Shown: one piece after another, positions 18,150 through 52,414 of the stretch
How the letters are laid out: every line of letters starts with the position of its first letter
Position numbering within the stretch: position 1 is the first letter of the stretch
DNA from: Tubulanus polymorphus
Lineage: Eukaryota > Animalia > Nemertea
Assembly (NCBI RefSeq): GCF_964204645.1
Contig: NC_134030.1
Location: 8,955,222-9,019,221, forward strand
Direction of reading: 5' to 3'
Length of the DNA stretch: 64,000 nt
Notes under the pieces: model-generated
What the model saw: the letters and a program-made list of their open reading frames with translations, nothing else
Database searches by the model: none
Told to the model about the DNA's origin: nothing
Position numbers and translations under genes: made by a program

Positions 18150-19046
18150 GTAAGTTCAATCCCTTAGAACTGTACACGTTAATAAAGTCCTCGTATCAAT
18201 ACGGATTGCTTTGAGCTGTACTGGCAATAAAACGGTTAAATTCGACGTCTCTACTTGACTTGTCAACATCATTGTCCCCGTCAAAATTTCTAAGAAATTC
18301 ATTTCCGGGCGTTTTTGTGTCTTGAATATTTTAAACGATTTCGTCCCTAATTGTCACATTCGGCATGATATTCTGTCCGAAAATTCCAAGGAAACATAGA
18401 CCAAAGTTAATTTGAGGAAGTGGATATTTTGCCAATGCGGCATTATTTTAGTAAAAGCTTTTTTGCCAGGGCAATATGTAATAAGGTATACTAATAAAAT
18501 ATGGCAATGAAATTGTAATATTGGGTTCAGGGTAAGGGTTTTTATGAAGTCTAGAGGGTTAGGGTGAGGTTTAAGGTCTGTTTTTACCAAAGTAAATAAA
18601 TTTTAACAATTCATTTTCATGCCTACCATTTACAATTATTTTGTTTTATGAGAAATTCGCATTCAACCTATAGGCCTTATGAGGTAGACGATTAAATGAT
18701 ACCCGGTAGCCTAGGCCTACCTGGTTAAGTTCAAAATGTGGGTCAATCCTCTCTGCTGCTGCCAGGATTCAATCCCGATTCCCATATACCATGGTTATAG
18801 GCTAAGAGATAACTACTAATCTGAATATTACATAATTTTAATTCTTACCCCTAGTATAGTTTAAACTAATTTAGACATTGGACAGGCACTCTACTTTAGA
18901 GTTTATGCTGCTCGTATGGTGTCCTAGAGAATTCGCTTGTTTTCTCTGATGATATTTGTTACATGGCTATGTATATCTTTCGTTTTCAGATTGAAAGCCG
19001 TCCAGCTGAGTGTTTGAATTTTTGCTCGACATGTGACCGGTTGAAA

Positions 19047-19108
19047 ATGTCTCATCACAAACGTGAAGACTCGAAACGGTTTTCAGGATTCTTTCCGCGC
19101 ACTGAAAA
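19047..19108 (+). CDS. ARHGEF12: RGS-RhoGEF (ARHGEF11/12, RhoGEF2-like) first coding exon variant A: MSHHKREDSKRFSGFFPRTE(K)
   Basis: Acceptor ends at 18989 (exon starts 18990), GAAAATGT start context, AA|GTAAGA phase-2 donor. In frame with the phase-2 acceptor exon at 52320. Confidence 0.65.
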
Positions 19109-19194
19109 GTAAGAAAAAACATGTTTTTTTGCATGCTTTAATTAATAGACTTCGGTACGGTCAAAGTATTGATCTAACATGGCACCATGAGAAT

Positions 19195-19440
19195 TCAAAA
19201 TATGAGCCCACAACTGAGCCAATATGAGCTCACAACTATGGCATGAATATGAGTCCAGATCTTGGCTTACACGAGCCCACAACATAGCTGACTTGGTCAA
19301 TATGAGCCAGTCTACAACTCATCCAATATGAGCCTAGTCTATAACTTGGCGAATTTGAGCCTACAATTACATCGATGTGAGCCCAAAACATAGCTGATTT
19401 GGCCAATATGATGAGCCGACAACTCTGCCAATATGCCATC
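19195..19440. repeat. Degenerate tandem array of AATATGAGCC / ACAAC motifs
   Basis: Repeated (CC)AATATGAGCC, CACAAC and ACATAGCTGA motifs. Confidence 0.7.
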
Positions 19441-22400
19441 GTTGCTTGTTCATTCGATCAGAAACTCATACTGGCTGAGTTGATGTGAGCCATTAGAAAT
19501 ACTAATCATAAATTTGATTTTTGATGTAGAAATATCAAGTGGCAGCTCGGGCTGGCACTGCAGAAGTCGGCTCACAATTCCGCCGATCCGAAAAGATTCC
19601 AATAGCAAATGAAGTTGCGCGAGAAATGCCACAGTAATTCAGTCGCCTGATGATGGCTAATAGTCGTTAGCCGAGACGTTAATCACTATTTTATTCAAAA
19701 ATTTTACATCTTTGGTTGAATTATTGCGGGATTTCTCTTGTATATTCATTTTACACGGATATTGCGTATCTTCTTGACTTATCAGTAACAGTAGTTTCTT
19801 TTTCATAACAATAATTCTTCGAAACATCTTAGTAGCTTTTCAGTGAGTGTCATAAGGCAAGCGCTGTGTGAAGTCCTAGTTGTACTTTATCGCGACTAGG
19901 TCTCGCCGACCTAGGTTTCAGCATTTTTACGCCGGAAAACGAAAATATTTTCGAAGCGTTCGAATTAAATGCGATCCATCATAATATTTAAGCTTGTCAA
20001 CGCAGCGATGATCCGTTGCCATAGCGATCAAAACTACGTCTACTAATCGGCGGACCGCGTGCGTAATTACGGCTGGCTTTTAATTCGAAGAATGCAGAAT
20101 CTAAAATCGAATTAATTCGCTCTCTGAAAATTAGTAAGCTAATTCGATTGATGGTTTCAATGACTATGATCGGAGTACAAGCTGACCAAACACTGCCAAT
20201 TGCGTTCGTAGCGTTTTATTTTCTTCCACATACATATCATTTTGTGTATATGATATGTGGCGGTTTAATAGGCTATCTATTGATCGCTTTTAGAAATGAA
20301 CAGCTTTTTAATTGGAAGTATCGGCGACGATGTAACGGTTAAGCCTACCAGGTGCTGCCATCTGTCGCGCATGTTTTTTTCCCAGAGCTCTGCGAATATA
20401 TTATAACCAGGCCTCCTGTTTGTTGTGACCGTTTATCGAAGTGATCGCAGTTATAGCGCAGCTATTTGATGGTGCACTTCAATTTTCTGATTAGATATTT
20501 GTTGTAGATGTTAGTGGGCGTTTTCGTTGTCTGTATATTTGAATGTACTGTCTCGGCTTCCCTACGACTTCTTCTAGTCCTTAAAAACTCTTTCTAAACA
20601 GACGATGCTTTTAAAGGTGCTCGAAACTCCTTCAATATGAGCAAATTGCCCGAAACTCCTTTTTAAAACTCATCAATTTTGAGAAATAGGCGATTGAAAT
20701 TTTTCGTCTAGTTTGTAGTTGTACAGTAGACTATGCCCAAATCGGTACAGTTGGGACCATGGTTTGCTTTACCCTATTAGGCAGTTACTGAATTAGAAAC
20801 CAAGTTCAGGTAGTAAGGATAAAAATGTGCTTACAAAACCTCTGAATTAATGGTTTACTGAGATCAACAGTACCGATTTAGGAGGAGTCTATAATAAGTG
20901 GGATATGATGATAAAGTGATGCAGACACTGTTTGTTAAACCATAACATCGCATTGAAATAGTTATTTCTTTATTTTGTCTTCGATTCAGAAAACTCAAAT
21001 TTTCACATGTCTTTTCATACGTTATTAGCAGCTCTTCTCTTTAAACTAATCAATCAAGGCTTAAATTCTTATTTTTGTCTCATGGATATTTCATATTTGC
21101 CGACCGAAGACGTGACGTCGGGCCGCGAAATATTCGTTTCCTAACGGGGACGATGTCGGCGTGTTTAATTCCGCCGGGTGTCATATTTCATTTCTCGTTG
21201 ATAGAAATAGTCGCCATTAGGTTATACCATTTACAGTCCTGTAGAACAAGGAAAAAAAAAATATTGAATGATGGTTATTGCTAGTTGTTCGGGCTTATAT
21301 ACCGCGAGCTGAAAGATATCGATATTGATTTCTGTTCGAAAATTAAACCCTCTCAACCTTAGGACTTTCAACTGTATCGTAATCAGAGTGGTCACTGAGC
21401 TGGAAAACCCAGGCTATCGGACAAGTCTAGAAAAAATCGGGGAAAAGACCTGCGAATTTGACAGATTTCGCGAAAATTCATGGAGGAATTTGGATACGTC
21501 AATAAGTACCGATGTTTCTTAATCAATTCATGAAAAATGAGTATATAGTAATATTTCAAAACCAAGAGGCCACCCTGATAGTCTTAACATTTAACCCACT
21601 GAATTAAAAGAAAAATTTAAATCATAGGGTTTTTCATTGTTGATCAATTGTTTATATTATAGGCTCGGCTTAGTATATTATAGTAACTCTTGGACTCTAT
21701 TGCTTACTTATACGATTCTTACTTTTTGATGCATGGTATTAAAGCAATAAACAGTGAAAGCAGTTGTTATTGCAAGTGTAAAGTATATGAAGATAATTTC
21801 TACCTATATACGCCAACCTGCGAACCTACCATTGTTTACGGGTGCTAGTTACTGTTAGTGCTCTGTTACTGCTGTGACAAAAACTCAAAACAGGGCATTT
21901 GTCTTTGATTTTGTTTGTTTTTAGCCAGGTTTCATTTCAAGTCTTGTAGTAATAATAATTTGTAATTCATTTCTTATATAGCGTATAACTAATACTTATT
22001 TATGCATTTGAACATAGAAATACACAATTGATACATATAAGTAAGCATGTAATAAAACAATAGGAGTAAAAAGATCAAGTTAAAAGAAAAGTTAGTTTGA
22101 AAATGTTCTTTTTTAAAAAGGTTAAAGTTTTCTGATTAGATTTAAAAGATTGGAAGAGACAGGTCTTAACAGAATCTATTTATCAATGAAGAATATTACG
22201 GTGTTTGATATAGATTGAAGCAACGCTCATTTATAGGCCTATATAAATTGTAATGATATGAGAGATTTCAACTCAGCGAAGTTTGCTGAAAAAAGATACT
22301 TGACCAAATGACCAGTGATTCTATCGGGACTATTCTTGTACGATATCGGAAATTCTATCGGGAAATTAGGTCAGCAGAATGGAGTTGAGGACAGAGTGAA

Positions 22401-24292
22401 TGAACTTTTTTCCATTGTATCGCATGAAATTCATTTTTGCCGGTCTATTATTCGGCATCTATAAACCGGCTATGGGGCAGCAGGGGCGACTCCGTGCACG
22501 CGTATTGTGTTTTGTACAGACATTCAATAATCAAACAGGCTCCACAGTAATGAGAATGTCACCAACCCCGTGCGGGACGTGATTTAGTGACCAGAGGTTC
22601 TTATACCTGAAACGATGCCAGAACAAGTCTCGTGCACTGACGATTTATTTTTTCGAATTTGACTTGAATTGTGGTATGGATTGTTGGTAAAATCGCAATC
22701 GACAGTGGTATTGCTGATACTATTACGCACATGGAATTCTATCTTTTTCATCTTTTGTTTGTATCTGTGGTACTTGTTCGCGATGGAGAATGTCACCACT
22801 TCTACTAGGCTCCGAATTCAATCATGCCTACATTGTCTCTTCGGTGATCCTTGATTCTAGGTCAGAGATTGATATATGGCTTTTAAACGTATAAGTAACC
22901 GGTTTCCCCGGCGTAGAATTTCATCGGATATTTCGAATTGTCGAAATTTCCCGATCATGTGACGACGATTAATCAGATTTGTCGTCGTCGATAATATACC
23001 GTTGTTTATCAGTTACGTACGTCCTACATGTCAGACTCGCGAGGCTCGAAGTTCACCGGTTTATTTCGCCATCGATAGTTTTAGTTGACACTGTATATAT
23101 ATATATATATATATATACAATGTATATATATCTAAGTGCATATAAAGTCAGGCTGTTTTAACGGCATTGGTTTTCGTTTCAAAAATGGAAACTTTGAAGG
23201 AATTTTTGCGAAAAACGATAGGAAGAGTAGGGATGAACGCTGTTCGGTATTGCGGATTATGAACGTAAATGATCACCGGCCAGTTGTCAATAGAGCAATG
23301 ATTGAGCATTGTTAAGTGGTTGAATGCTGGCATATACGCGGGGCAAGAGGAGATCAAATTCAAATCTTCCGATATATTCCGATTAAGTTATTACCGGCGC
23401 GATCGGCGTCGCTGCCAGATTCAAGCATTAATATCTCGCATCGTCGCGGTGTCTCCGTGAAGTGCGAACCGTACTCGGATTTATAGGCACTGCTCAACGT
23501 TATCATATACCTTTGTATCTCCAAAAGTGCTAGCTGTACTTGGGCTAACGGCAGAACTTCTGCGTTCATACCATTTAGGTATCCCTGAAAAGTGTTCGCT
23601 GTGCTTTCAGCTGTAGTTCTCCATTTACGGTATAGCTTTGTGAAGTGCTAGTCGAATTTTCAATAGTTTCAGCAACTTCTATTGTTGACATAGAAGTTCT
23701 AGAACTTCTTTATTTGGATCACAGTTACCTTCACTTTCTTTATCGGCACGGTGACAGTTTTCTCTTTCATCATTCGGTTGAATGGGATTAAGCAAGGCAC
23801 ACGCTTGAACTGCTCTTTTCATATTCCGGTCTGACTACGTGCGTGTCATATACGTCGTCGAATGTACTTTGATGTTCCGATATAGGCTTATATTTTGGTA
23901 AACAGGCCTCTCAGTAGACACAGTACAAGAAGTCGTACATTTAATGCGAACACTTTTTCACCTTGTTATAGTGCGCCGTGGTGCCTCGTTCGTTTGTTGT
24001 GATAGCGTCAAAGGTGAAATTCTTACGTTTTTTTTTTCATCGTTGCCTATTGTTTCGGCGATATCTGACAGCGGAAAGCCCCTCAGTACTGTTCGGATTA
24101 GTGTCTAATACGGTCAGCCTTCTCGACATTTAAGAAGATCCCTTGTTTCGCGTTGTTAAAGACTAATCAATGAATCGGAAATGAGTGGGCGTAATATTTA
24201 AGTGGAATAACGATGATTATCTTACGTATACCTATTACTAGGATTTGATTACTCCGGGATTTACGATTCGAGCGCTCGACCCCCCCTCGAGA

Positions 24293-24357
24293 ATGTCCGG
24301 AATTCGCCGAGCTTTTTCGATGAGGATCCTCGGATCGGATCATCAACAGAAGTACAG
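24293..24357 (+). CDS. ARHGEF12: RhoGEF alternative first coding exon variant B: MSGIRRAFSMRILGSDHQQKY(R)
   Basis: AGAATGT start, 21 codons + 2 nt, strong CAG|GTAAGG phase-2 donor, located in a CpG-rich patch. In frame with exon 52320. Confidence 0.55.
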
Positions 24358-25454
24358 GTAAGGATAAGCCATCTCGTCGGTAAGGAGTATTGGTATTATC
24401 ATCTTTAATTCCACAAATCCCTCCACGCACTTATACCGAGTTCGTAGTCTGACAGGGTTTAGTATGAATTCGATTTTTTCGAAAATCCAGTGATAAACCA
24501 ACCTATATAGTATCTCAACAACATGATCCTGTTTTTTTCCCCTCCAGGGAAAATCAGGGAATTCTGACTCTTTTCCTTAAAATCGAGGAAAAAACGGAGA
24601 ATTTGAAAAAAATAGCTCGGTCATTTTCTGAAAATCTGTTTTGATAGAAAATGCAAATCTACAGATCAGATGTAATGATTATAACGTCCTATTTTAGAGG
24701 ATTTCGAAAACTTTGATTAGAATTGAAATTCTCAAATGCCTGTAGCCTAATATTGTTTTCCCTATGATTTATTATCATCAATCATTTTCAATTTACTCGG
24801 TGCGCCGTTAAGAAAAATAATCAAAACATACCCGGGAATGGCTTCGTATTATTTCGCGATTCATGATTTCAGTACGCTTGATTATGATTCTTGATTATTG
24901 ATATAATCTGGTGATTCCATCCAATCAATGATATTCGAAAAAAGGGTCGAAGCTTTCAACGTATTTTTTTAATATTTGATAGAATCACCAAATTATCAAA
25001 ATATCTACAAAATTTTGGACACAATGATAATTCTATATTCATAACTATCTCTGATACATTGCTACCGATTAGGATGTTGACATCGGTGCATAACATTAAT
25101 TCAGCATTGTCACTATCTAAGTTAATTCCGTACTAGGCTCGCGTTAACTGTGTCCAATTTAAAAAATGTTCTATTACGGTTTTCGTAACGGTTAAAAATC
25201 AGTATCCGAAAGTATATCGGCACTGTTACTAAAATTGTGCGATAGTAATAATTTCCCCGATTGCCCTTATAGAGTTTGACCGGAGGTTTGCCAGAAGAGG
25301 TTTCATCGTTTTATGAAAATGAAGCGAACACATGACTTTTTCTGAGACAAATCTAATTCGCAAAAGTGGAGCCGGATTTATGTGGGCGATGGAAACAGCT
25401 TTTTGTGTTATTTCTGACTACACCATTAACGATATTGTCATGAAGGGCGGTGGC

Positions 25455-25950
25455 AGGTGGATGCGGTGTCTGACATGTGGCCATCAGGTTATGTCGACAT
25501 CTCGTGTCGCACCAAGTGATAAATCTCCAATTCAGGGTCTATGAGCATAGTACGATACCTCGTCGTTGTTGGGTCATTTTTTAGAATAACATTTTAAAAA
25601 ATATTTGCGATATATTCAGGTATCAAATGGATGATGAAATTTTCTTAAACATGGTCCCTATCACTCCTTGATTCCTGAAAACACTCCTTCGAAACAGTGA
25701 ATGCTTTTAAAGGTGCTTGAAAACCCTTGATTTGGGCGAAATGCCCAAAACCCCTTAAAAATTCCGGCAATTCGAATTTTTTTCGTCTAGTTTGCAGTAG
25801 TAGAGTAAACCTTGCACACCTAATGGATGTGGTGTCTGACGTATGGCCATCAGGTTATGTCAATGTCTTGTGTCGCGTAAGTGATAGATCACTAATTCAG
25901 GGTCTATGATCACGATACGTAACATTATCGTTGTTGGGTAATTTTGGTTG
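25455..25950. repeat. Local duplication (~25458-25590 vs ~25824-25950) separated by a family B fragment
   Basis: GGTGTCTGAC..TGGCCATCAGGTTATGTC..AAGTGATA.ATC..AATTCAGGGTCTATGA occurs twice. Confidence 0.8.
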
Positions 25951-28900
25951 AAATATGAATGAGCAAAGAAGTTTTTTTTGTTCTTTTTCTGAGAATGATG
26001 AAAACATTTTTTTGATTGTAGCGTGCCTGGATTCGAATATTCCAAGAATCATTTGTTTGGACATTTCCCTCCTTCAAAAAATGATTTTAAAAAATTTTTC
26101 ATTTCCTCTGGAATGATGTTTGAACAATCGTCTACGCGGTAAACCGAGCTATTAAAAAAAGTCTTATCAGGGACTTGATTTCTATTCAATCATCGATCGA
26201 TTAAATCGAATCTTATCTTTACAGCTTTAAAGTTGATGACGTAGGCCTATATAGATAGGTTCCTCGAAATATGAAATTAACTCCTTGAAAACTCTCTGTA
26301 TATCCACGAATGACTGATCTGTCGAGACGCTGATTTGCGTAGTTTAGCGTTTACAATCATTTCAATTATGAAATATTATCGATCATTAATTGCTCGTACG
26401 AACTGCCTGATATTGTGGTTTTTTGGGGGGATATGAGGTGATCAGCGACCTTTGAGTGTTAGTGACCCATTTTGAAAAGGTCGAATGCTACCGTAGAGAT
26501 GAGACTTGAGCCGCGTCACACACTACATTTAGAACGGTCTTGGCCCGTTCCAATTTGAAACGCGCCTAGCGAAAAGCCGTTTCCTAATTGGTACGTTCGT
26601 TATCAAACCGTTCCAATTTGGACCTTAAAAAGACTGATCCAGACTCCGGGATGCCTCACAAATTGGATCGATTTCATAGGTCCAAAATGATCACCAATTA
26701 AGCAGTGTCTTCAGTGACAACCTCCGAAATTGTGTGTTTTATTGTATTGTTTATAGTAAGCGGGGTAAAGAAAATATTTGTTGTTTTGATACTACGGCTG
26801 AAATGTGTTGCGTAATTTCATAAAACCTATGAAAAAATCAGTTAAGAAAGTTGGCCTTTTATCGTGGGCGTTATGTTGATGCACGTATTTCTATTATGAG
26901 CCGGCCGCTATGTAGTTCTATTTGTCTCTCACTAATTGAAGATTCAGATACATTCCTTTTATTGTGCATTATTGATAATGTCTCGGTCTCTGCGTCTTGT
27001 ATTTTATGTGTCTCTGAAATAAGCTATCTCTATCGTAATTGCTCGTTTTGTCGACGCCCTTATTTTCTAATTGATACTAGTGATCACGGGATAGATAAAA
27101 CGTGAACGGCTGGCTTTGGTTTGAAAAAAATTTTCATTTGTTCAGATAAATCTATATATATGTCATAAATGTCTTGTTTTTAGTCCATATGGTTGGGAGT
27201 GTCCACTATCTTATGTTATAGACTCACGGAGTCGGGACTGTTAATATAAAACTCCCTCATCCTCACAGTTCATCAAGTTATCACAATACTTATCTTGTCT
27301 ATGTTTTTTTATTGCGAACATGTATTTCCGTCCAATTGAATGAATAATTTTTTTCACTCGTTTTTAAATTGTTTACCTTTCTCCTGATTATCAATGCTTC
27401 TGCTTTTTGGTGAAATGAATATTGAATTGAATTGATGAAATTGAAATTCTATTTCTCCAAATTTTCATCGAGAATTTACCGACTGAAGGGCGGTTTTCTC
27501 AGTTGACCAGTTCTATTGGGTAAAAATGAAATAGAATAATGCTGTATAACGCAGAAAGCCCGAAGTAAAAGTTTTTACTGACTTAGGAAAAGTTTGAAAG
27601 GTCGGTTAGCCAATGACAGGTCAGTAATGAGCTTTGTGTCGTTCCATTTTACAGCTATTAGTCGGTACGGACGAAGCCGCATTTCCTCGTTAGCCGGCGC
27701 GACACCGTGGTAAATATTCCGATGTTCGTTCGTTATCTTTTTGATTAATTCGATTTAAAACGCCTTGTTTCACCTTCATTTGTTGCAGTTTATGCTGCTT
27801 TGTTTTATTGCTCAATTTTGTTGTTGACGTACCCGGCAGACATCAATTATCATCAGCGACTACCGAGACTCCAGCGTCTGCTTGTTCTATTCATCAATTT
27901 GAAAGTCTCTTGAGTCGAAGTGAAAATAAGCGAGGTTTCTTGTCAATGCCTTAATGTTGCTAGGTTTTTATTTCAGATTAGGTGTTCATATTCACCATTA
28001 ATAAGACACCATATCCGTGTTGATTATCTACAGAGAACCCCGCAATAGAAACGGAAAATACAGTCTTAAATGTTTCCTTGAACGAGTGGTTTATTCGACC
28101 TTTTGACTTTATTCTGATAGTCAACTTCCAATATTCCTGAAGATGACTATCAGAATATTTTCGTACCAGCATGGAATTAACTCGAGGAAACCTTTTTAGG
28201 ACTTTTTTTGACGCCTTATAAAACGTTACCATTATAAAACCTAAACAATGTTAACCATTCAGCGTCATTTTACAAACGACAACAGTAAATCGATGTGCAA
28301 AACGTCACAGGTTTATGTGTACACATACAAGCTATTTGGCAAAATATTATTGATAAAGATGTAGAATGGCTCCCTGTGATTATATAATGACCTCTATTTG
28401 AACGTTGAAATGTTATATTGCATTGAATATCATGATAAGACGAATTGTAATAGTAAAGGATGTATGATTATATCAGGAGCGGCAGGCATAAATAGAAATG
28501 ATAAGTAAATCGGATTATTCGGTTAAATGGCGGATGTATACACGATTTGGAAGTCTGATATAAAAGTCAGACCCTGACATGGGGATGCTAGTGGAATGAC
28601 GAAGCTATCTATGATCTGAGTAGGGCCGGCGTGAATTTCATCGGCGGCTACAAGCGGTCTATATAAAAACGTGTAAACAAATAATTTCAATATTCAAATG
28701 TTTTAGAAAATATGTTCGATATTAGGGGTATGCAAGTTTCATGAGATTAACAATCTATAATAGCATAGCTGTCATATACGGCTCCGCGTCCACTGATGGC
28801 ATGTGTATAAGGTGACAATTCAATTCAATACTTTATTGATCCTTATTACATTGAAATTACGGGATGAAATTCCCAATTTCAATAAAGTTACAAATTTTAG

Positions 28901-31461: not shown

Positions 31462-32642
31462 ATGGATCCGCGAAGACGGCGCAAATTTTTCTACCGCCCG
31501 TCGGACGAGCGCCGATTTTTCACCGGTTCGTGCGAGGATATCTATCGAAACGATTCGGCGCAACGGTCACCGGATCTCGTCGACGACGCCGCCAGGAATC
31601 TGAGCGACGCCGATCGCCTGACGTTGGGCGAATATTATGCCGAGAGGATCTCGCGCGGTTTAACGAGTCCGACGACGGCGGCGCCATCGGGGGCACGACT
31701 AAAACATCGTCGGTTTCTCACCGGTGGCCCCAGCGCATCGGGTCCGACTTCGCTACGCGTACATCGTCGTTTGAACTCCGACCTGTGTCATTCGTGGTCG
31801 GCTAATTTAAACGAGCTTCACGACGACAGACGGCAGATGTGTTTCCTGCTAGCAGCTCAGCGGCGCCACGAGCCTGTCGGCAATAGTCACCCGGATGTAA
31901 CGGTTAACACGGATTCTGGCGTCGGCGTAGAGAGCCATCGTCACGAAGGAAACGGTACACGACGTCCTACGACTCGCCACGAACGTAGTAGTCCTTCGCG
32001 CGACGATCCGAGACAACAATCGGAATCCGATCGCGTCGAAGAACAATCGACTCCGACCGAAATCAAGTACCGGTCGTTCACGCTGAATCGCAGCGCGTCG
32101 CGACGATCGCGAGATTTAGACGGCACGGGGCGAATCTCGCCGAATCTGGGTGCGCGGGATCGCGCCAAAACGGATGCCGTCGGCCCGGAAGATTTCGAAA
32201 CGTACTCGCTGCGACGAGCGAACGCGATCGATTTACAGGGTAGTATTGACGACGAAGGCGACGAAAAAGTCGTCGGGTTGAAAAAAATGGAATCAACGGA
32301 ATCGGTGAAAAGTTTATCGCACGAAAGCGATTGTGATCGGTGTTCGGTAAGTCCGAGATTGGAAATCACGTTTGTCGACGATCATTACGCGAGCGATTAC
32401 GCCGACCGAACTCTCGAACGCAATTTCAATCGACCGTTACCGAAATATGTTCAAAAACGACGCCAGACGTCGGATCCGACTGGACCGCAGCGCTCCTCCT
32501 TAATGTCGCCGTCGTCGGCGCGATACGATCGCGTGCGGTCGATTCCGGCTGATTCGTACGGCCACCAGCGGTCGAGGTCTCACGATTTCCACGCCGAAAA
32601 TAAACAGGTTTATCTGCACAGATCACCACAAAGTTTCCGGCG
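31462..32642 (+). CDS. ARHGEF12: RhoGEF alternative long first coding exon variant C (393 aa, R/S/D-rich, probably disordered)
   Basis: The only long ORF in the window (400 aa, GC/CpG-rich), with an in-frame TAA upstream at 31435. A CG|GTACGT phase-2 donor lies about 6 codons before the stop, and composition then drops to AT-rich intron-like sequence. In frame with exon 52320 (...PQSFRR-LGSLSKD). Confidence 0.7.
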
Positions 32643-32705
32643 GTACGTAGGTATACCTAGCTGAAAATATTAACCATTAACCATTGTTTAGTCGGATTGA
32701 AAATC

Positions 32706-32765
<60 letters not shown>

Positions 32766-32845
32766 TACATACATATATATATTTGTATATTTCGCCAACA
32801 TTTTTTCCTCCATTAAGATGGGATACTGGTGCGCCCTCTGTGAAA

Positions 32846-33252
32846 CAGGGTCCATGTGACTCCTTGATTCCTTAAAAACTCTTTCTAAATCAAAAATGCT
32901 TTTAAAACTGCTTGAAACTCCTTTAATTTGAGCAAAGTTCGAGAAACTCCCTCAATTTTTGAGAAATAGGCAATGAGAAATTTTAGAAGCTGTACAATAA
33001 ATAGACGATGCTTAAATCGGTACAGTTGGGACCTGGATTTGTTGCCCAATAAGCCAAATTAAAAAGGATTGGAATTGGCTTACTACGTAACCATCAAATA
33101 AATGGTTTACTGAGATAACCATGAAATAATTGGTTTACTGAGATAAACAGTACTGATTTAGGAGGAGTCTACAGTAATTGGGATATCAAAGTGATGCAGG
33201 CGCTTCGAAAACTCCTTTTTATCCATGAATGACTGATTTGTAGGGGCCCTGT
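32846..33252. mobile_element. Dispersed repeat family B (MITE-like, CAGGGTCC / GGCCCTG ends)
   Basis: Shares CTTAAAAACTCTTTCTAAA...TGCTTTTAAA...GAAACTCC with 20570-20930 and similar segments at 25650-25810 and 26280-26330, and in reverse at ~6170-6550. Confidence 0.7.
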
Positions 33253-36739: not shown

Positions 36740-36856
36740 ATAGAGAATCCCACACTGATATGACAAAAGATAAAGTCCGAGAAGTTTCTTTACCGTACGG
36801 TAAGGAAACTTCCTCCTCTTTATCTTTTGTCATATCAGCGTAGGATTCTGTATTTA
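36740..36856. repeat. Palindromic hairpin element
   Basis: CTGATATGACAAAAGATAAAG / CTTTATCTTTTGTCATATCAG arms centred on TTACCGTACGGTAA. A diverged half copy lies at ~37935-38003. Confidence 0.7.
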
Positions 36857-39800: not shown

Positions 39801-42800
39801 TGTATTGATATATCATCGATGACGACGGGAATATTGCCTCGGTTGCAGCAGCGCCGAATACCGCGGCGTAAATGATAGGATCGTCTATAAATCTCGTGCT
39901 TTATTCGTTTGACTACGGAATTAGAGAGAAATTCAATACGGACAGATATGGCGCATCTGTTGTGGTAGATGTGGAATTGGTTCAACGGTTCTTGGTTGTT
40001 GATTAAACATGGGTTTTCAAAAATCTTGGGAAGTTTTGGAGACCGGGAATTGATTTTCAAGGCCCTGAAAAATCTATGGAAATTTAGTTTTGCTCTCTTA
40101 TTCTCTTTTTTTCTCTAATTCATAATCTGGATGTGGAAAAGGTATGGAAAAAATATGCGAAAATGAAATTGGGAAACCCTATAAGAATGCTGTGGAAATG
40201 AACTGCTTGCAACTCTGCATAGTCAAATTCAACCTAGAACTATTGAACCGAGATTCTCGATCAGGATTTGTTAGGAAAGAGTTCTGAAACCCTTAAGATA
40301 TTGTATTCGTATTCGTTTTTATTTTTAATGTGATCAGTTTTGCACTTCATTTGACAAATAGTTGAAAAAAAACTAAACATGCAGGTAAATTTGTTGAGTT
40401 TGCTAGATCGCGTGTAAAATCAAACAATTTCCATCTCTACCTTACGTATTTGCCTGTGTTAATTGATTAGATTCCGAGCAAGTCGACGTACATGTCAGAT
40501 TGAAACACAATCACAATCGTACATGTCATTGAAAAAGCAAGTCAAATTCATTTGGCCACCCTGGTTAATCTGATTGCGTTTTCAACGAGAAAAGAATTTA
40601 TTTTTCTAGTATAATGATTTATTAGTCGGCGGTTAGGTTCTCTTTATTCGAACAGCATGTATATTCGCAGTTTTGATCTTGAAATAGGGATTGTCCCTGT
40701 TATTTATTTGGTTGGTAAATTTTGTTTGATTTTCTGATTGAGTGTCCCTTACAGACCCACCACACGTGCCGGGAGCAAAACAGGGGGTTTGATTTTGAAA
40801 TCGGAAATCGAAGTACACATATAGTTGTGTGATCGGCGGTCGAGTTTGCATATTTTTTTGTTTAAATCGAAGTACATGATTGGGAAATTCGCAGTTTTAA
40901 GGGCTACGTTTGCCTGGCAATCCCCGAAATCTGCTGCAAAAGAGTGCAAGTATAGCATATTTCATATCTCTCTCTTTCTATGTAGTCGTAGTATCCGATC
41001 GCGCGCCGGGGAGAAGATTAATATTTTCATAAAAGAATTCACGGACGGACGATAAATCAGTATACAAAAGTACTACTCGGAAGACTCATTCTGCGCGCGC
41101 CGATAAAAGCGCTAAGTGATAAAATTGCCCTAGCAGTTATGATAATTGTATATATAAAGTAACGTTATACTTTACTTAACTTCTAACTAAAGCTTTAGTG
41201 GTTCGTAATACGATGGTTAGTTTTTTGATTTATCGTACAGATTAGCGTATCATCACGGTTTTCGTTTTGAATGGTAGCTGCGATGTTTTCTTTGGGAGCT
41301 GTAGACATCTATGAAGTGCCGAATGTAAAACCGATGAAATGGGGTTTTTTTAAAACCATCCTCGAAATGAATGTGGTTGACTAAACCTCGGTCCTGAAAG
41401 TCTCATGAGGTGATTAAAACCTCTCTAGGACTTCTAAAACTAGAGCATAAGCTTGTGGATTTTGAATCGGCCGAAGAACAAGTCAGTTATTGAGCATACT
41501 GCGGTATTATTTGCGATCAATTTCAATTTTATAGTCTCCTTGATATCTGTTTTATAGGCGTCTATGATAAGACGAGCATAATTCGTGATTTATAAGAAAG
41601 ATATCAGCTCTTTTTCTCGTTGTGAGGAAGTAGTTCATTTCAGTCACGTTACTTAGATTTGAAAATGGAAATGCCGTACGTAGGAATACCCGACTGAATG
41701 CTTTGAAAATAATAGCCCATTAAACAGGGATGAATCCAAGGGAGGGCCTAAGCAGGGCCCCTATTTTTTGGCAAGAGGATATTTTCACGACCGCGCTTAA
41801 GAAATTTACACTTACAGTGACAAATTTTTGTGGTCATTTTGTTCTGAAATCACTAAATGCTCAAAAAATGATCTACTTTTAAACTCCCCCCCTAAAGGAC
41901 TTTGCGCCGTCACCCCTCGCATTCAGGTGCCAAGAACGGGAATAGTGATAGTAATAGTAATTTGATTTCATTAGTTCTATCCATTTGATAAAATGTTCAA
42001 CAGCGCTTACCATTATGTTTGTAATATTACCCACAGCCTGTTCTAACCACAGACTCTAACCATTTATTATTCATCTCTCCATGGTGAGAAGTAACATCTG
42101 AGCTGCTGCTGTGCGCTCCAGAGTCATCCTAATAAACAGGGTTTGAACCCACGGCCTGACTTGAATCGAACTCTCTAACTACTCGCTCACACCGCTCGTT
42201 TACAACTAGCCCTTGGATTTTTTGCCCTGTATCCGCAGTTGCTGAAGAAAGCATGATCATGAGTAGAATTTATTCATTCACTAAAAGTGATCTGATCTAT
42301 CGGAGTATTGAAGCTTCAATCACCACCAGTGGTGAGGCCACTAACTACTTTGTTATATACAAACGATCATTATCTTACAATCATTAGTTGAATTTAGTTA
42401 ATCGTGCGTTCGTTAATTAGAAGCTTTCAGTACTCGGGTTGTAGTAGCAGCAGCGAGGTATAGGTATACTGGTAGTTATTTTTACTTCTTTTACTTCGGC
42501 ATGAGTAAAGCAGGTTCAGGTAGAAACAGATATTTCATCGGTGCGGTGCGCTATTTAACATTCGCTGAAGCTTCAATAATTTCCTGCATTTCGTGAAAAA
42601 AAATAAGTCGCCAGCGTGGTTTCATTATATGGATTGTTAGTCGTACATCCGTAGGCACTGTTAATCAATTTCCGGTACTTAGAAGCTCAGGTAATGTTTC
42701 GGGCGATGTCACTTTCTTTGATACTAGTCTTCGAGGAAAGATCGCGTTCTCGTTTGAAGTAGACTCGCGTCGTAAATCGCTGTTGACTGCTGCAGTGCGC

Positions 42801-44626
42801 GAGGGCTCTGAAAAAAAATAAGAAATCGTTGAAACGTTTTGGCTAGTGTTTCTCTGATGGCGCGCACCAACGCAGAAATCTTCATTTCGCATCGAATTTC
42901 CGTGAAATGGAAACCCGGGCGCCGCCGTTTAGCCTGGCTATTATTAGATATTGAAGTAGTGACCCAGCTGAGACATTCCCAGAGACGGCGCTCCAACTGA
43001 CTGCTAATTATTTTCAAAAAATAATTCCTAAATCCTGCGCTGATTGTTTTGAATGGTGTCTCCAAAAATATTCTTACCAATGCGATAGACCTCGAGATCG
43101 CTTTTAATGAACTATTTCATCGTTTTCCTAATTTATTTTCTTTTTGTGGTTTAACTAGTAAAACACCATGTTCGAGTTCCACAGTTGAGAGAGTTAAGAT
43201 CTGACTCAGTGTTTAATCATTGAAAATGAACAGATTTTAACTCAAGAGTTAACTCTTACTCGCAACTGTGGAACTATATCCATGTGTGCCAACCGATTGG
43301 TCTATGCGTACCAATGTATATACTAACCTCGGCCTTTAGAGTTGCCGGGATCCATCGGTCATGTATCTCTGGGTTTCTAGTGGGACGTTTCTATCTGCTG
43401 CTGCCTTGCTGATCGTTCTTACACCTAGAAGAGTTCGCGATGAGAATGACACAGCAACCCCAGTCGTCGCAAGCTCTACTGCTGGTGTAAGACCGATCGC
43501 ATCGCAGATTATTACGTCTATTACGAGTAATAGAAAATACATCTATTCGTTTACATGTGTCTACTCGCTGCAGGCTGATAATAACTGACGACGTTCACAT
43601 TCATCATCGCGAGAGATGCACGGATTTATTGGACAGTGAGTCGTCGTCTTACAGCGCTGATTGTTCTTTCGCCGCTGTCACTCCGTGCGAACAAGTGGTT
43701 ATTCGCTCTTCGCTCTTTAAATAACGATAAGCGTTGCGTGTTAATGGCGATGTCGAGTTGGAACGAGTGAATTTTTTGACATACACGATTTATGATGTAT
43801 GTATTCTTTTCGGATCAGATGTTGTAGTCGATTGCTGTACGAACGAATTGTGTGTAGGATTTTGGGTTCTACGTTCAGAAACGATGTCGGTATGTATAAC
43901 GTTTGAATCCGTCGTCGCCCGGATTTTTTTCGGTTATTAGACAGTTTGTGTATTCGTCGTTCTTTTTCGGTAATTAGACGGTTTGTGTATTCGTCATTCG
44001 TAGGAATAGCTTCTTCCTTTCGATTTGCCGCCCACGTTTTATTTATCACTTTGCGCAATACAAGTGAGATGATTGTCAATATACGGGGGATACACCGTGA
44101 CGAGATGGAAGGAGTGTTTGCTTGACAAGAGAATAGTGAACCCGCGAGAGCAGCGGTGGTAGCGGTGCGTTTATTGGCGCGGTGAACATTTCGAAGTTTA
44201 TTTTTAGGAATATTTCATCTTCGCGCGTCCGGTTTGGAATATTTCACAAAACTGTACAACAACCGTTTTGCTGTAAGGTTCTCATATATCGACTGTCAAC
44301 CGTCGTAATCAGGTTAACCTGTGTCAACGTTACGCGGTCGGGTTCTCGACGTATTTTAAACGAGCTCGACCTTACAGCTCACGTGACCTTGAAATTGGTG
44401 GAAGCATTTCGTATCGGTTGATCGGATTTAAGCGTGAACGCATTCGGCGCATTCGTTTTAACTGCAAAATCGCGGGTGGTAAGGCAGCCCGGTTCGATAA
44501 TCGCCACAACACTTCAGAACCGATCGATTCGCTTCTGACCTTGACACGGATTTGACCTAGTTTTTCGTGAGAGGGTCGTATGAAAAAGTAAAAAGCGCGC
44601 GTGCGCGTTACGATAAAGCGGCGCCG

Positions 44627-44889
44627 ATGTGTGCGATGCTCGGTTGGATTTTGTTGCAGCACTATTTCGGCGACGATGAGGCGCACATACTGAAACGGGA
44701 CGACGATGAAGATGATGAGAACATGAACGACGAGGAGGATACGAGTGACCGTCGATTGATCGATGTTTTCGACGACGTCGATGTCGTCGGGAATATAGTC
44801 GGCGACGACGACGTTTTCTTCGACATCGACGAAATCGAGGGCGCTTTGTCCGATTCGTCGGGCGACGATTTCCGTTCGGCTTCTTCAAG
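44627..44889 (+). CDS. ARHGEF12: RhoGEF alternative first coding exon variant D (87 aa, highly acidic)
   Basis: ATG-initiated ORF MCAMLGWILLQHYFGDDEAH...SDSSGDDFRSASS in a CpG-rich island, ending in an AAG|GTTTGT phase-2 donor. In frame with exon 52320. Confidence 0.5.
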
Positions 44890-47377
44890 GTTTGTATCCA
44901 TCATCTCTGATCGCTAATTCGAAGAAATGCCGCGTGTTTATTGGTTCTCGGGCTTCCGTGAGATCCTTATTGCCATAATGTCTGTCTGGCTTGTGTTTGT
45001 TTATCTGCGTGTCTGTCTTTCAGCTATTTAGCTTCGTTAATAGTGGATCGATCTTGATGAAACTGGGTACAATGTTAGTATGGGGGTCTAGTTGGGTGGT
45101 GCAAAGAATGGGTCCAGTGCACCACCTAGTGGCAGAACTAGGCAGTAAGAACTTTGTTCTTCAGTGACATGACCTTGATGAAGATGACATCATAACTGAC
45201 GAACGGGGTTGAAATTTCAAAAGTTATCTTCATATCCAAAATGCAATGGGAACTAATGCATTGGAATTTCAGAGTTCCAGTTTCTAGCCCGAGCCCGAGA
45301 ACCATTTTCGCCTTTGGCTTGTTATATTCTCAATTTTCTGAGAATGATTTCATTTTCTCGCAGATAGTTAGTTCTCTGTTAAAACAATTTGGATTTACAT
45401 TGGAAATTAAGTTGAAAAATTCCGTCGAACAAAACTTTTCATCATTTTCTTCTTCCTGCTGTAACAATCCATTACCGATTACCCAGTAATGTCTCAACTT
45501 CAACATGGCTGGCTTAGGTCTATCATTAACGACTGGAATTGAATTAACTGTCTCCAACTGGGAAATCATTGAAAGGATCTTCAGGGGCCCTGCGATTGGC
45601 AACTACATCAGCATTCTCCACAATAGGTTTTAGAGGGGTGGCCATCGATTTCTACATCCACCTCTCTGTAAATCAGCTACCCCTACCAAAGTCAGTATTC
45701 TATCAATGCTGATGCTTGCTTTGAAATGTATTGAGATGCGTACAATAGAAGATAATGCCAAAATTTCGCTTGATCTTCCGGCTATGCCATGATTTCAACA
45801 TTTAACAATGAATGACGCTGTACATTTAGAACCAGCTGATTCAAGCAACTAGCAGTGACACATTTGTTTCCAGTTGCGGGGACGTCTACGATTGTCAGGG
45901 ACAAAAACGCTGCTTCGCAGGTCGACCTGCGCCCCGCTCAAGGGTCGGCGGCATAAGTCGGCTTAAACAGCTGTGCGATGTCGCCGCAATTTTAAGCTAA
46001 CTCCCTTTTCTGAAACTGTATTTATTCGAATTGTCGTGTTTGCGTTCGTCCTGTAATGCAGAAGTCGTTATCGTTAATAGCTTGTCAATGGCTTACAGTT
46101 AGACGGTCGTACAGCGTCAGGGGGGAGAGTTCGTGCGATATTTTTCGACTCCACTTCGTCGCTGCGCGATATAATCAGGTGCAGCAACTCTCTCGACCGA
46201 GATGAAATCCGTTTAAGATTGCGTTAATTCCTCGGGTGTCTTACGACGACGTATGCTGCTTACGTTCGGTGTAAATTATCGGAAAGCTTGTTCGAAAAAC
46301 TACTCGCGCCGAAGAGAAAGAATTCGCCACTGGAGTCTTTTCGTTCTAATCATCTACATCATGGAAAACATGATGAACTTATGAGAATGTTTCGGCGTGC
46401 GAACTGTCGGTAGATTTGGGTACAAACTTCTTAAATTCCGATGAGCGAATGAGAGAATTTCCTACTGTTGCTTTAGCCTTATTTCCTCGGCGATGCTCTC
46501 GCCCGCAGGCAGTACATAATACATATCGTTTTTTGTTATGTCTTCTTCTCATCCGAGATATTCGCTATAGTGAATGACTTTACTTAAAACAGAAAACTTT
46601 GTTTATATACACAGAAATTTTGTGCATTGCTGCTTGTTTTGGCATACTGTCTCGTGTTATACTTAGTACATAGTAAGTAAGACCTTTGATGCGTAGAATT
46701 ATGCTTAGTTTTTTGTACGGTCCCTAAAAACGAGCTAGTACCTCTAATGTCGAATACATATCCTGTGCTAGGTTGGTTTGAAGCTATTAGGTCTGATCAG
46801 CGAAATGTAATGTTAGACACCAAAATTGAGGGTCTAGAGTGATTGGAAGCCGAGATATTGGAGATATACGTTTAAGCATGGCAGCCATCTTGAAAATCCA
46901 AAATGGCCGCCAATATGTCGTTTCCGGTCATGGCTCCTATAAAAAATTGAAGCTTGGCCCATCGGAAGCATGTAAAAAAATTTGGCCCTTTTGTCCGGAA
47001 CGTCCACGTTATTCTTAAATAATGGTATGCACCTAAGCTGCCTGGCTAGTGCTCATCGTAGTAAATGCTATTGTTTGGACCATAATGACCGCTGTTATGT
47101 AGAGGCCATTTGGATCATACCGGATTACGCTGCTAAATATTGGGTGTGTTGTTGGATGCTTTCCGTTTTCTCCAAAAGAGAATGCCAAATGCTGGGAAGA
47201 CGATCTGCATCAAAATGCTTTATTTCTACTCATTTTCTACAACACCGGCTACTTAGGCCATATATTAGAAATAGATGAGCGCAATTAGATGCTCCGGACA
47301 TCCCCTGGGCACCATGCACTTTTTAGACCAAAGATTACCATTTTAAGACTAATTTTGTCATCCAGCTGTTTGAAAAG

Positions 47378-47504
47378 CCCTTTCAGTGCTGACTAAATAA
47401 TACCATTTGTTGGAGATTATTTGAAAATTTTGAAAAATTCCACCCAGTGTGTTGAATAGGTATATACACACGGCTTTAGTGTACCAGTAGACACACTGAA
47501 AGGG
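47378..47504. mobile_element. Internally deleted family A MITE
   Basis: CCCTTTCAGTG...CACTGAAAGGG termini. Shares ACCCAGTGTGTTGAATA and AGTAGACACAC with the 3287 copy (the former with one extra C there). Confidence 0.7.
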
Positions 47505-47993
47505 TCAAACACCAGGCTTCAGATTCGAGATCACTTTTTGCAAGTAAGGACTTCACATCTGAGTCCAGGTACGTACTTGGGAATAGATTTTAATTAAACT
47601 GATGAATCTACTGAATCCGACGATTCGTTTCATAGTTCGAAAGTCATATTTCTCAAATCTGAAAGCATTGTTTACACAGCGTCTGGCGATCTGAAATACG
47701 TCGTTGCTCTCTAGAGATTCGTCTGTGGTTTGGTGTCAGATTGATGAATAACCACATTGACGGTCGCAACAACGGTGACATTAAACTTCCTCCTACTCGA
47801 TGTGAATGTCATGGACGTGAATATGTTAGACCGTATACCATCAAAATCTGATAAGAGTTTGAAGCCTTAAAAAGTATATAGAATTTTAGGCAGGGTTCCT
47901 TTATGCAGGTAGTATATCTAACTGTGTCCAGCCACCCCCCCCCCCCCCCGAAACCTTAGATACTTTATCATGTTTACGTTTTCTTAACATCCT

Positions 47994-48121
47994 GGGGCCA
48001 GTTGCTCAAAGGGTGGTTAAAGATAACCGGTGAATAAATACCAAAGTAACAATGGACTTCTAATTGTCACTATGGCAACTATCCACTGGTTAGGTTTAAC
48101 CAACTTTTGAGCAACTGGATC
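47994..48121. mobile_element. Short palindromic MITE
   Basis: CCAGTTGCTCAAA..GGTTAAA / TTTAACC..TTTGAGCAACTGG arms. Similar-style small foldbacks at 43175-43275 and 55982-56088. Confidence 0.65.
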
Positions 48122-49935
48122 CTTACTTCGAACAAAATTAAAGGAATGCTGAAAAATAATCAAATGTCTGGCTGAGGTGCTGGATTTATACTAAGGGTAA
48201 TGAATCCATTGGGATTTTCTACAATGTCTTTGGCATCTAGTTCTGATATATGGCTATGTTTGTCTAGGTTAAAACATAGAGGGTGAAGTGCGTAGAGATG
48301 AAACATTTTGTTGCATGTTGTCTTCCCATGTGGCCACCTACCTCAGTTGTACACTCCGCGGCCCATGTTGAGATGTGGTTTAACCTTGAATCAGAGAGCA
48401 TTCAACCACACAACTACATGCAAACGCATTACAGGTGCTCTTTGAGTTGTTGCCGAGTTCCTCTTACAGTTCAAAGCTCTTCGTATGAAGTAAAAAAAGA
48501 AATCTAGAAAAAAAATCCGATAATCCATGAAACGGAGCATACTCGATTGAATATGAACGAAGCTTCCAAATAAGCTGTATTTGATTATTGATTATAAGTT
48601 GTTGACGATTAGGCCCGGGCCAAATCGGCACGGATCAGGCCCGAAATGTGGTGCGTGCTTTATTAGAGAGTGCATTCACACGCAAACCACTCACTCGACG
48701 TATCGGCCCCACTCCGCGCGGTGGCGCCACCCCGCGAGATTTACGCGAAGCAGCAGAACACAAACACGGCCACTCTCTCAATTTTCAATGATAGAAATCG
48801 TGTGTGCATTTCAATTATTTCGGCTGTTAGGGTTTTAAGGCACAATATAAGTTGATGATGTGATATGGCGATGTTAATTAATGATAATTCCGCAGTGAAG
48901 CTAGTCACGAACGGTGCCGATTGAGTGTATAGCTGCCAAAGACACTGAAATGTGCGTAGTTGCGTAACTATTTGCAGTGAATTGCAGACGAAACATGAAG
49001 CCTTAACAGCCGTTAAAAAAAAAATTATACCAATCGCAATTGTAAAATAAAAATGAGATAGAACCTAAGTTAAAATTCTGGCCATTTCTAAAATGTTATT
49101 AATTATTATTACTAATTTTTAGTCAGTGCGGAACGTTTAGTTTTCCAACAATAATGAGGGGTGGTAGGTAGTCATGCAATTCAAGTCATCGTTTATTACA
49201 CGTTACTACCGTGTTGTTGAAAATCTTGCGAGTCCTGGATCAAACCCCATTGAACAATGTGATCTGTGTGCTGGCCACAAATGCACACAGATCACACTAC
49301 AATACCCATTACACACTCCAGTACCCACAGCTTTCATATATCCATCCAAATATTTAGTGGCTTTCTTCCTGGATACTAAACAATGCTCAAACAAAGCGAA
49401 TCGGGTCATTTCCGGAACCAGATGAAATTTAAATGCAATCATTTGTCCGTGTTGAAATTTGGCCCAGGCTTGGTCCGACGTTTTTGGTCGGGCCAAATTT
49501 GGCACCCGTATGAACAGATGTTCCGGGCCAAATACGCTTGTCTGATTATACACGGCTTAAGTTATCGAGTGCTTTTATTCATGTTTTTAAACCAATGCAC
49601 CGATTTACGCCTTTTATTTCGATTATTTGATGGCAACATATCGGATTAATAATGAAAAATTGTTTGTCTCTTGATTTTTATGTTTCGTCGACTTTGTGTA
49701 AAGATTATATTAAACGGTGGTAAATGCAGAAAGTCTGAGCTGGCACGTACTCAATCATCTGTATCTTGAGTCTGAAAACGTTATCATCGTCGCTGTTTAC
49801 TGAAGGCTTCTGGTTGAAACAGTATTTTTAATAATCGTAGCCATGCAAAAAGTATAGAATCGATCGAATTTTCGCGACGAGAGACGTCACGTTTCTCGGA
49901 ATATTTCTGTCTTTCCGCTAACTAGTGAACTTGCG

Positions 49936-50053
49936 TTCGAAAGGTAATACCGGTATCGACTTACTTTCTGGTTACCTTTCCGACCACTTTTCCCTTCGAA
50001 AGGTAATACGGTATCGACTTACTTTCTGGTTACCTTTCCGACCACTTTCCCTT
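49936..50053. repeat. Tandem duplication, ~59 bp x2
   Basis: TTCGAAAGGTAATAC(C)GGTATCGACTTACTTTCTGGTTACCTTTCCGACCACTTT occurs twice. Confidence 0.9.
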
Positions 50054-50899
50054 TCAAGAGAGTCGATATCGTTTTTCATCACTGACCGCCAGTTTTACGA
50101 TGTTGCTAATACATGCGCATTGTATTCTCCTTGTATTCTCCGGTTCAATCGCTAATACCGTAGAGAGAGGCGCGAGGTCAAATCGTTCCTAATATCGGCC
50201 TTGGTTTCTTCTTCATTCCCTGCAAACGATGAATTATAGTTACTTATACTTAGACATTCCACAGAGTCATAAATAACTTAGTACGGTTAACTCGTAAATT
50301 CTTGTCCGCAGAGCGCGTTTTAGATCGCTGCAATCCATTTTTTGCCGTGACGGTTCGACCTACTCGGAGCGCTGTCCAAACGGGAAGATAAGCGGATTTT
50401 TTTCATGAGGAAATGTCTCGTTTATCAACAAAAATTGTGCACAAGCATACATTATTATATTCAAGAGATTTACCGTCAAAAAACGGTCTGTTTATATCGA
50501 GGTATAAATCATCGGGAGAATGCTGTATTTTGATCGAAGGAGAGGGTGGTTTTTTGGCAGATGGATTCGTATTTGATTGCACAGCTGTAAGGTAAAACAT
50601 CAATCTCAGCCCAGTGAGTGGAGGCGGCCTACAGACATTCTCGCGTACAACAATGGTTCGAATGCTTCCGAGCAACTGTCCCGCAAAATGTGCTTTGTTT
50701 TTGTCTGAAAACTGTTGAGAAAAAATACAGGAAACAACATAAAAGCCTGGCGCAGACGGCTGACTGCCGATGCTGATTGCAGCGCAACTACCAATCAGGA
50801 GGCAATTTATAGACCATGAAGAAACCTGCAAATAATGTTTGCACGTTCATGCAACTAGCATAATATTGGGCGTGTTTGATATTTGTAGTCACATGGAGA

Positions 50900-51620
50900 C
50901 TATTTGGCACGAGCCAAATTGGCACGGATCAAGCCCGGGTCAAATTAGGCCCGTGTCTAATTAGAGAGCCTGTCCATGCACGTGAACCACTCACTCATAC
51001 TAAACAATGCTTAAGGCTGATTTTCACGTAGCTGATTCCTGCCAGCTTTTTCCAGCTACGTGAAAACGCCCCGAGCAACAACAAGCACGAATGTGCATGG
51101 TCACCCGGACAACCGAATTTCAATACCAGTGGCACGCGTTTTTAGGAGCGGTTTCCAGCCGCTGGACAAAAAAAGCTATTGCATGCAATAGCTGGAAATT
51201 GCCGCTGGTAGTCGGAAACCGCTTCAGCAGTTTGGCCGTTTTCATGAGCGTTTTTGGTGGCAGAGCTGGAAACCACTGCGGGAAGCATTTTTAAGAGCGG
51301 TTTCCAGCCAGCAATTTCCAGCTGAAAAATTTTGCAGTAGCTTTTTCCAGCTACCGCGTTTTCCAGCTCGGGGCCAATTTTTCGGTGTTTTCATGAGCGG
51401 TTTCCTGCGGCAGCTGGAAAAAGCTAGCTGGAAACCGCTCGTTAAAACCAGCCTTTAAACAACGCGAAGTGAGTCATTTCCGGAACCAGTAGCAATTCAC
51501 ATGCGATTATTTGACCCTCGCTAAATTTTGACCCGGACCAAACAGGCACGGGCACATTTGGCACCTGTGTGAACAGTTGTTCCGGGCCTAATTCGGCACG
51601 GGCCAAAAATGCTTGTGTGA
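50900..51620. repeat. Dispersed GGCACGGGCCAAA-rich repeat (family D), interrupted by the 51014 MITE
   Basis: Homologous segments at 48611-48696 and 49373-49546, plus a short fragment near 29740-29800. Confidence 0.7.
51014..51454. mobile_element. PIF/Harbinger-type MITE nested in another repeat
   Basis: Imperfect TIR AGGCTGATTTTCACG / CGTTAAAACCAGCCT, TTA target duplication on both sides, many internal TTTCCAGC/GCTGGAAA motifs. An empty site is visible in the homologous repeat at ~49373-49400. Confidence 0.8.
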
Positions 51621-52319
51621 TGTCGGCTATTGTATTGTATGAGATCAGCTGCAGTTGCATGAACCGGCAGATGAGCTGCGATTTTTAAGCAAGAAAATAG
51701 CCCATCTGCACCAGATTTAAAAAATGGACGAAAGAACTATCATTGTACTAGTGAATTTCTGCACAAATATCATGACATTTTAATTCTAGACGTTCTAATC
51801 GTAGTATTAAATTTGCCTGCGTATCTTTGATAAATGAGTAATCGCAACACATGAATTATTAATTGATTTAATGTAAATGTCCCTGACATATAGCCTTAGC
51901 TATCTCCAGTCTCTCTAAACCTAGAAAGTAAGCGTACACAATTTTTCCTTTACACCAGTTATTAGAGTCTTTTCTTCACAATTTACCTTCTGTCTTCATC
52001 CATGCAAACAGGATGTCACTTATTTGGAAATCAGGGAATGTAAAAAGGCTAAAAGTCTGGGAAATTAGATGAGATTGCTAGATCGGGCGTAAAGTCAAAA
52101 AGTTTTTCGTCTATGTCTATGTATTACCTATTTGACTGTGATTGGATTCTTAGTAGATGGGAAAACAACTTGTCAGGGAATAATCAGGGAAAAAGTGACC
52201 GTCTGGATCGGACCGTGACGTGCCTGTGCATTGACCACTATGGATTGGTCCGTGATGTACCTGTGCATTTTTTTCTGCGCCAAATATCTCATTACGTATG
52301 TTACTGTTATCTGTTTCAG

Positions 52320-52414
52320 GTTAGGATCATTGAGTAAAGATACAGATTCAACTTCGCCGAAAAAAGATAAAGATAAAGACGAAAAGCAGTTTGCCGATCT
52401 CAATAATTTACAAG
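52320..52414 (+). CDS. ARHGEF12: RhoGEF constant pre-PDZ exon (R/K)LGSLSKDTDSTSPKKDKDKDEKQFADLNNLQ(G)
   Basis: CTGTTTCAG acceptor and AAG|GTAAAA donor, 95 nt, phase 2-1. In frame with the PDZ exon at 54262. The start resembles the RLSSLSS segment of the ARHGEF11 N-terminus. Confidence 0.8.

Follow-up and report, generated by a model that had tools for sequence, protein, structure and literature searches.

Where does translation of the RGS-RhoGEF of the nemertean Tubulanus polymorphus begin, if the first exon common to its messenger RNAs (mRNAs) carries no start codon? The question arises from a stretch of 64,000 nucleotides (nt) on contig NC_134030.1 (C6:8955222-9019221, forward strand; hereafter the window, in whose coordinates all unlabelled positions are given), which holds the 5' part of this gene. 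Four ATG-led open segments, each leaving two bases in front of a GT, precede the common ("hub") exon at 52320, and all four had been taken for alternative first exons in the original prediction. Direct reading of the sequence verified the coordinates of these segments and their two left-over bases. The products are likewise as described, i.e., two short basic peptides, a disordered arm of 393 amino acids (aa) rich in R, S and D, and an acidic arm of 87 aa, the two long arms being mutually unrelated. The interpretation as four first exons held in part: codon statistics support the two long segments (here termed the arm and the acidic exon), both of which are very probably real coding exons, and leave the two short ones (segments 1 and 2) no better than chance.

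The explanation favoured here, to which about an even chance is assigned on the basis of codon statistics and splice phase, is that the arm and the acidic exon form a pair of alternative coding first exons of the RhoGEF gene. In each of them, an ATG lies near the start of the open frame and a phase-2 donor closes the exon. Both would be spliced to 52320, most likely as mutually exclusive first exons under separate promoters, and one RhoA activator would then occur in two forms that are identical except for the N-terminus and that may differ in function. The features involved are the following (a slash marks the exon boundary).

31462-32642, plus strand: arm, 393 codons of basic, disordered sequence plus 2 bases; phase-2 donor GGCG/GTACGT
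44627-44889, plus strand: acidic exon, 87 codons plus 2 bases; phase-2 donor CAAG/GTTTGT
52320-52414, plus strand: common (hub) exon, 95 nt, encoding (R/K)LGSLSKDTDSTSPKKDKDKDEKQFADLNNLQ; takes two bases in front and leaves one base behind
54262-54360, plus strand: PDZ exon a (GLIQRCVVLQRDERGYGLTVSGENPVFVESVKE), with matches to the PDZ domains of ARHGEF12 and ARHGEF11
54685-54734, plus strand: PDZ exon b (GAAHRSGVREGDKILK), read directly; splice sites tttag/ and AAG/gtaagt
54847-54904, plus strand: PDZ exon c (VNGTLVAGSNHKEVVRLIK), read directly; splice sites ttctag/ and AAAT/gtaagt

Identity of the gene

Profile searches of the genome together with a structure-sequence match revealed PDZ, RGS-like, DH and PH_16 domains in that order on a single strand: (i) PDZ exon a (match at 54264-54359), with the PDZ domains of ARHGEF12 (expect value E 5.5e-13) and ARHGEF11 (E 5.8e-8) as best matches among solved structures, (ii) the RGS-like domain (PF09128), with two exon matches above the curated cut-off at C6:9049179-9049644, on the strand of the window and 30 kb past its end, (iii) the DH domain (PF00621), with exons at C6:9058147-9059180, and (iv) the PH_16 domain (PF17838), with an exon at C6:9059604-9059852 (E 4.6e-23). 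Exons for the RGS-like, DH and PH_16 domains are located 39-50 kb downstream within the gene and 30-41 kb beyond the end of the window. The PF09128 locus is the only one in the whole genome; a search of the RhoGEF gene for a C1 domain was negative. Since the domains share their strand and follow one another in this order, they are expected to reside on one transcript. The assignment to the RGS-RhoGEFs made in the original prediction is therefore borne out: as judged from its domains, the gene whose 5' part lies in the window is the only PDZ-RGS-DH-PH RhoGEF gene of the genome and an orthologue of ARHGEF11/12 (PDZ-RhoGEF/LARG). Binding of G-alpha12/13 and RhoA-specific exchange activity are predicted from family membership. 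Exons were used as search queries singly; every exon of the gene except the 393-codon arm encodes fewer than 110 aa.

The common exon and its requirement for an upstream start

The hub exon contains no ATG, is preceded by a strong acceptor (tgtttcag/G) and has a codon score of +0.32 bits per codon. With one leading base used to complete a split codon, it encodes LGSLSKDTDSTSPKKDKDKDEKQFADLNNLQ, and its final base together with GA (54262-54263) yields the Gly codon that opens PDZ exon a. Since the reading frame continues in this way into the PDZ exon, the hub frame is fixed rather than arbitrary, which upholds the phase-2 requirement that had been proposed for the constant exon at 52320. Since the hub exon lacks an ATG and opens in phase 2, an upstream exon with an ATG and a phase-2 donor is required in every mRNA.

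An in-frame ATG is also present shortly upstream of the hub exon, within the intron (52240-52319), with a stop-free frame up to 52320, and would provide the leader MDWSVMYLCIFFCAKYLITYVTVICF if transcription began within the intron. The codon score of this leader is -0.55 per codon, and the open frame probably represents a translated polypyrimidine tract.

The intron directly after the hub exon harbours a 48-bp minisatellite (52570-53064; ~10 copies, 81 % matches, 198-bp higher-order period), which yields long spurious open reading frames (ORFs) on both strands.

Coding potential of the arm and the acidic exon

Coding potential was scored with a codon-usage log-likelihood model, for which 12 long open frames of the genome with Pfam domains (~7,000 codons) served as training set and the window's own non-coding sequence as background. 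Open frames of at least 60 aa served as controls (243 in number; mean -0.16, standard deviation 0.12, maximum 0.204 bits per codon). The arm and the acidic exon each score above all 243 controls, and they are the two top-scoring open frames (the arm first, the acidic exon second) in the 72 kb extending from 20 kb before the window through to the hub exon. Another frame, open at 48606-48788, scores 0.18 bits per codon; it lacks both an in-frame ATG and clear splice sites and was set aside for that reason.

The arm lies in an open frame of 408 codons, its ATG being located 8 codons into this frame. With 86 bits (0.219 per codon), its score exceeds those of its other five frames (0.04-0.10). Among the donors near the 3' end of the open frame, only that at 32642 has the phase compatible with the hub exon, and the acceptor scan found no pyrimidine-rich acceptor before the ATG. 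The encoded sequence, rich in R, S and D and with a net charge of +8, appears largely disordered: structure prediction with AlphaFold2 without an alignment gave a mean pLDDT (predicted local distance difference test) of 40.7 and only a few low-confidence helices. The arm has a single copy, matching only itself in the genome, and no match to Pfam. Judged by these properties, it most likely represents a genuine coding exon that serves as an alternative first exon.

The acidic exon, with a net charge of -24 over 87 residues, scores 0.272 per codon, compared to -0.06 and -0.13 in the other two plus-strand frames. Position 44889 is the sole donor in its open frame with a consensus match of at least 4/7, and the acceptor scan detected no pyrimidine-rich YAG acceptor before the exon. 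The two arms show no mutual similarity (best E 8.5 in BLASTP). Taken by its codon score and donor, the acidic exon is probably a real coding first exon.

Several results weigh against such a pair of first exons. In case of the acidic exon, the minus-strand frames are also positive (0.15-0.17), for which reason its coding evidence is weaker, and the sequence is of low complexity. In addition, a weak in-frame GAG/ acceptor at 44572 would turn the acidic exon into a 318-nt cassette following a phase-2 donor, and the 18 codons ahead of its ATG (44573-44626) are coding-like (+7.1 bits). In case of the arm, no homologue was retrieved among 1.84 billion cluster representatives or in a word search of proteins, the latter comparing only proteins of 0.55-1.75 times the query length. 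Finally, a scan for the TATA box, the initiator (Inr), Inr plus downstream promoter element (DPE) and the DNA replication-related element (DRE) upstream of each ATG gave nothing above the background of the window.

Metagenome contigs likewise gave no confirmed locus for the arm. The exact 400-aa ORF containing it is not on record, and the lacking self-match carries no weight. Thus, the arm appears to be without a detectable homologue in other species, as may well be expected of a disordered sequence.

CpG-rich patches had been noted at three of the four segments. The local observed/expected ratio is indeed raised at segment 2 (24293), the arm (31462) and the acidic exon (44627), where it amounts to 1.4-1.9 (0.77 at segment 1). 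However, the whole window already reaches a ratio of 1.23, with patches of 20-40 CpG per 400 nt every few kb along its length, so that these patches are weak evidence for promoters.

Short upstream segments

Two short segments and one additional candidate are located upstream of the arm.

15026-15130, plus strand: candidate upstream first exon, 35 codons (MKNDEDD...AASSS); phase-0 donor GTCG/GTAGAT, in frame with the acceptor at 18990
18990-19108, plus strand: segment 1, with ATG at 19047 followed by 20 codons plus 2 bases (19047-19108); donor AAAA/GTAAGA
24293-24357, plus strand: segment 2, 21 codons plus 2 bases (MSGIRRAFSMRILGSDHQQKY); donor ACAG/GTAAGG (6/7, the best of the four)

Upstream of 52320, open segments running from an ATG to a phase-2 GT number 1046 on the plus strand; 36 of them have a donor consensus of at least 5/7, and 15 of these 36 also comprise at least 20 codons. 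Phase and donor alone are therefore insufficient support for a short segment. The codon scores of segment 1 (-0.02 per codon for 19047-19106) and segment 2 (-0.06 per codon) are close to zero and uninformative. No earlier ATG precedes that of segment 2 in its open frame, and an A is found at -3; a weak GAG/ acceptor at 24292 would alternatively give a 66-nt in-frame cassette exon. In hydrophilicity, the peptides of both segments exceed those of the other chance segments compared, which is a hint only. Segments 1 and 2 may be further starts, but are indistinguishable from chance.

Segment 1 is preceded by a strong acceptor (ttcgttttcag/ATT at 18989/18990) in phase 0, through which the open frame runs. 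It may for this reason be an internal exon beginning at 18990 rather than a first exon, although the stretch 18990-19046 scores -5.2 bits, i.e., as non-coding. A matching upstream partner would be 15026-15130. Among the 636 phase-0 ATG..GT segments within 39 kb upstream of 18990, it has the highest score (16.7 bits, 0.48 per codon); its donor matches the consensus at 3/7 positions only. This segment is proposed as an upstream coding first exon purely as a hypothesis. It falls into the densest CpG patch upstream of the arm (14800-15400; 56 CpG per 400 nt), which may represent a further promoter/first exon, belonging either to the RhoGEF gene or to a divergent one.

Codon-like repeats (CATCGT, GACGAC) occur in the same region (14800-15400), where both strands contain open frames. 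Pfam searches with all arms, the short exons and seven other ORFs of the window gave nothing meaningful.

Alternative explanations

Apart from a pair of alternative first exons, the same segments can be arranged in series, some of them being internal or cassette exons. Examples are the joining of 15026-15130 to 18990-19108, segment 2 as the 66-nt cassette from 24292, and the acidic exon as the 318-nt cassette starting at 44572. This arrangement is unlikely, though the foremost of the alternatives. It draws on the strength, phase and open frame of the acceptor at 18990, on the top rank of 15026-15130 within its CpG-dense patch and on the coding-like codons at 44573-44626; the acceptors at 24292 and 44572 moreover keep the frame after a phase-2 donor, the lengths of both exons being multiples of three. 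However, both of these acceptors are of the GAG/ type, G at -3 being the least favoured acceptor context, the supposed 5' part of the exon at 18990 is not coding-like, and the donor at 15130 is poor. Ranking after it, and likewise rather unlikely, is the possibility of only one real upstream coding exon, either the arm or the acidic exon, with the other one being a chance or decaying frame, or the arm being an orphan gene (ORF 31462-32664, 400 aa) situated inside the long first intron. The arm is without a homologue in the searches made, its frame closes 7 codons past the proposed donor and so also constitutes a free-standing ORF, and AATAAA/ATTAAA motifs are present 336-437 nt downstream of it. 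As to the acidic exon, its length alone is not significant, since the window contains 29 ORFs of at least 90 aa. On the other hand, the scores of both exons exceed those of all controls and are frame-specific, both exons end at a donor in exactly the phase needed by the ATG-less hub exon, and closure of the frame soon after the donor is what a real exon is expected to show.

The proposal of the original prediction, that all four segments are promoter-specific alternative first exons, each spliced straight to 52320, is regarded as quite improbable. All four are ATG-led, leave phase 2 and have usable donors, with segment 2 having the best donor and a favourable ATG, and the hydrophilic peptides of segments 1 and 2 set them apart from the other chance segments compared. 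However, segments of this kind are abundant upstream of the hub exon even at the more stringent donor threshold, the codon scores of both short segments are near zero, and segment 1 combines a strong acceptor and open frame with a CpG-poor stretch. Least probable of all is an extended version, in which four or five promoters place unrelated, fast-evolving disordered arms, including a lineage-specific basic one of 393 aa and an acidic one of 87 aa, before one PDZ-RGS-DH-PH body, the arms acting as promoter-selected regulatory or targeting modules with a common phospho-switch. The latter element stems from the split codons formed with the hub exon (read by hand), where the left-over AA, AG, CG and AG plus G give AAG, AGG, CGG and AGG, i.e., K or R before LGS at each junction, resembling an RxxS-type site. 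Little weight is given to this motif, since two of the four codons follow from the AG/ donor consensus. The suggestion that the different N-termini diversify localisation is speculation.

Comparison with known systems

The order of PDZ, RGS-like, DH and PH_16 domains is the same as in other members of the RGS-RhoGEF family, i.e., vertebrate ARHGEF11 (PDZ-RhoGEF) and ARHGEF12 (LARG), Drosophila RhoGEF2 and C. elegans RHGF-1. The latter consists of PDZ, RGS, C1, DH and PH domains (PMC6611649) and thus differs in its C1 domain from the present gene. A further difference to the family is the 393-aa arm before the PDZ domain, which is without a detectable counterpart in the database proteins searched. 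In a limited literature search, no paper describing N-terminal isoform arrays was encountered for RhoGEF2, PDZ-RhoGEF, LARG or rhgf-1, and the absence of such arrays is not claimed.

In clustered protocadherin and UGT1A arrays, the variable exons are paralogous and encode folded domains. The RhoGEF locus resembles these arrays in that 5' exons distributed over tens of kb would join one constant acceptor; it differs in that the arms are unrelated to each other, the long arm is disordered and at most two variable exons are supported. Greater likeness exists to genes with alternative promoters, in which ATG-bearing first exons are phase-compatible with a shared ATG-less second exon, exon use being deduced from sequence statistics in the present case. 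Coding first exons under alternative promoters are a very common design, and the arm is unusually long compared to the typical "few dozen residues" (PMC13082882). Given how common this design is, the finding mainly refines the annotation of the gene.

If both long exons are used, the only G12/13-to-RhoA exchange factor of the animal would exist in two versions or more. The sole difference between them would be the disordered N-terminus, long and basic in one case and short and acidic in the other, that immediately precedes the PDZ targeting domain, and they would offer a handle on how sequence preceding this domain tunes localisation or autoinhibition.

Neighbouring sequences and a second RhoGEF locus

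An (AT)40 microsatellite (32711-32790) starts 69 nt past the proposed donor of the arm. In the 20 kb before the window, the only coding-like frame is a 100-codon open frame on the minus strand (about -16765 to -16466, locus L010; 13.7 bits), which may be an exon of a neighbouring gene on the opposite strand. Elsewhere in the genome, a second locus with DH and PH_16 matches and no RGS-like domain was found at C5:21688265-21689823. Stops within these matches suggest introns, and by its domain content the locus probably encodes a GEF-H1/p114-type RhoGEF.

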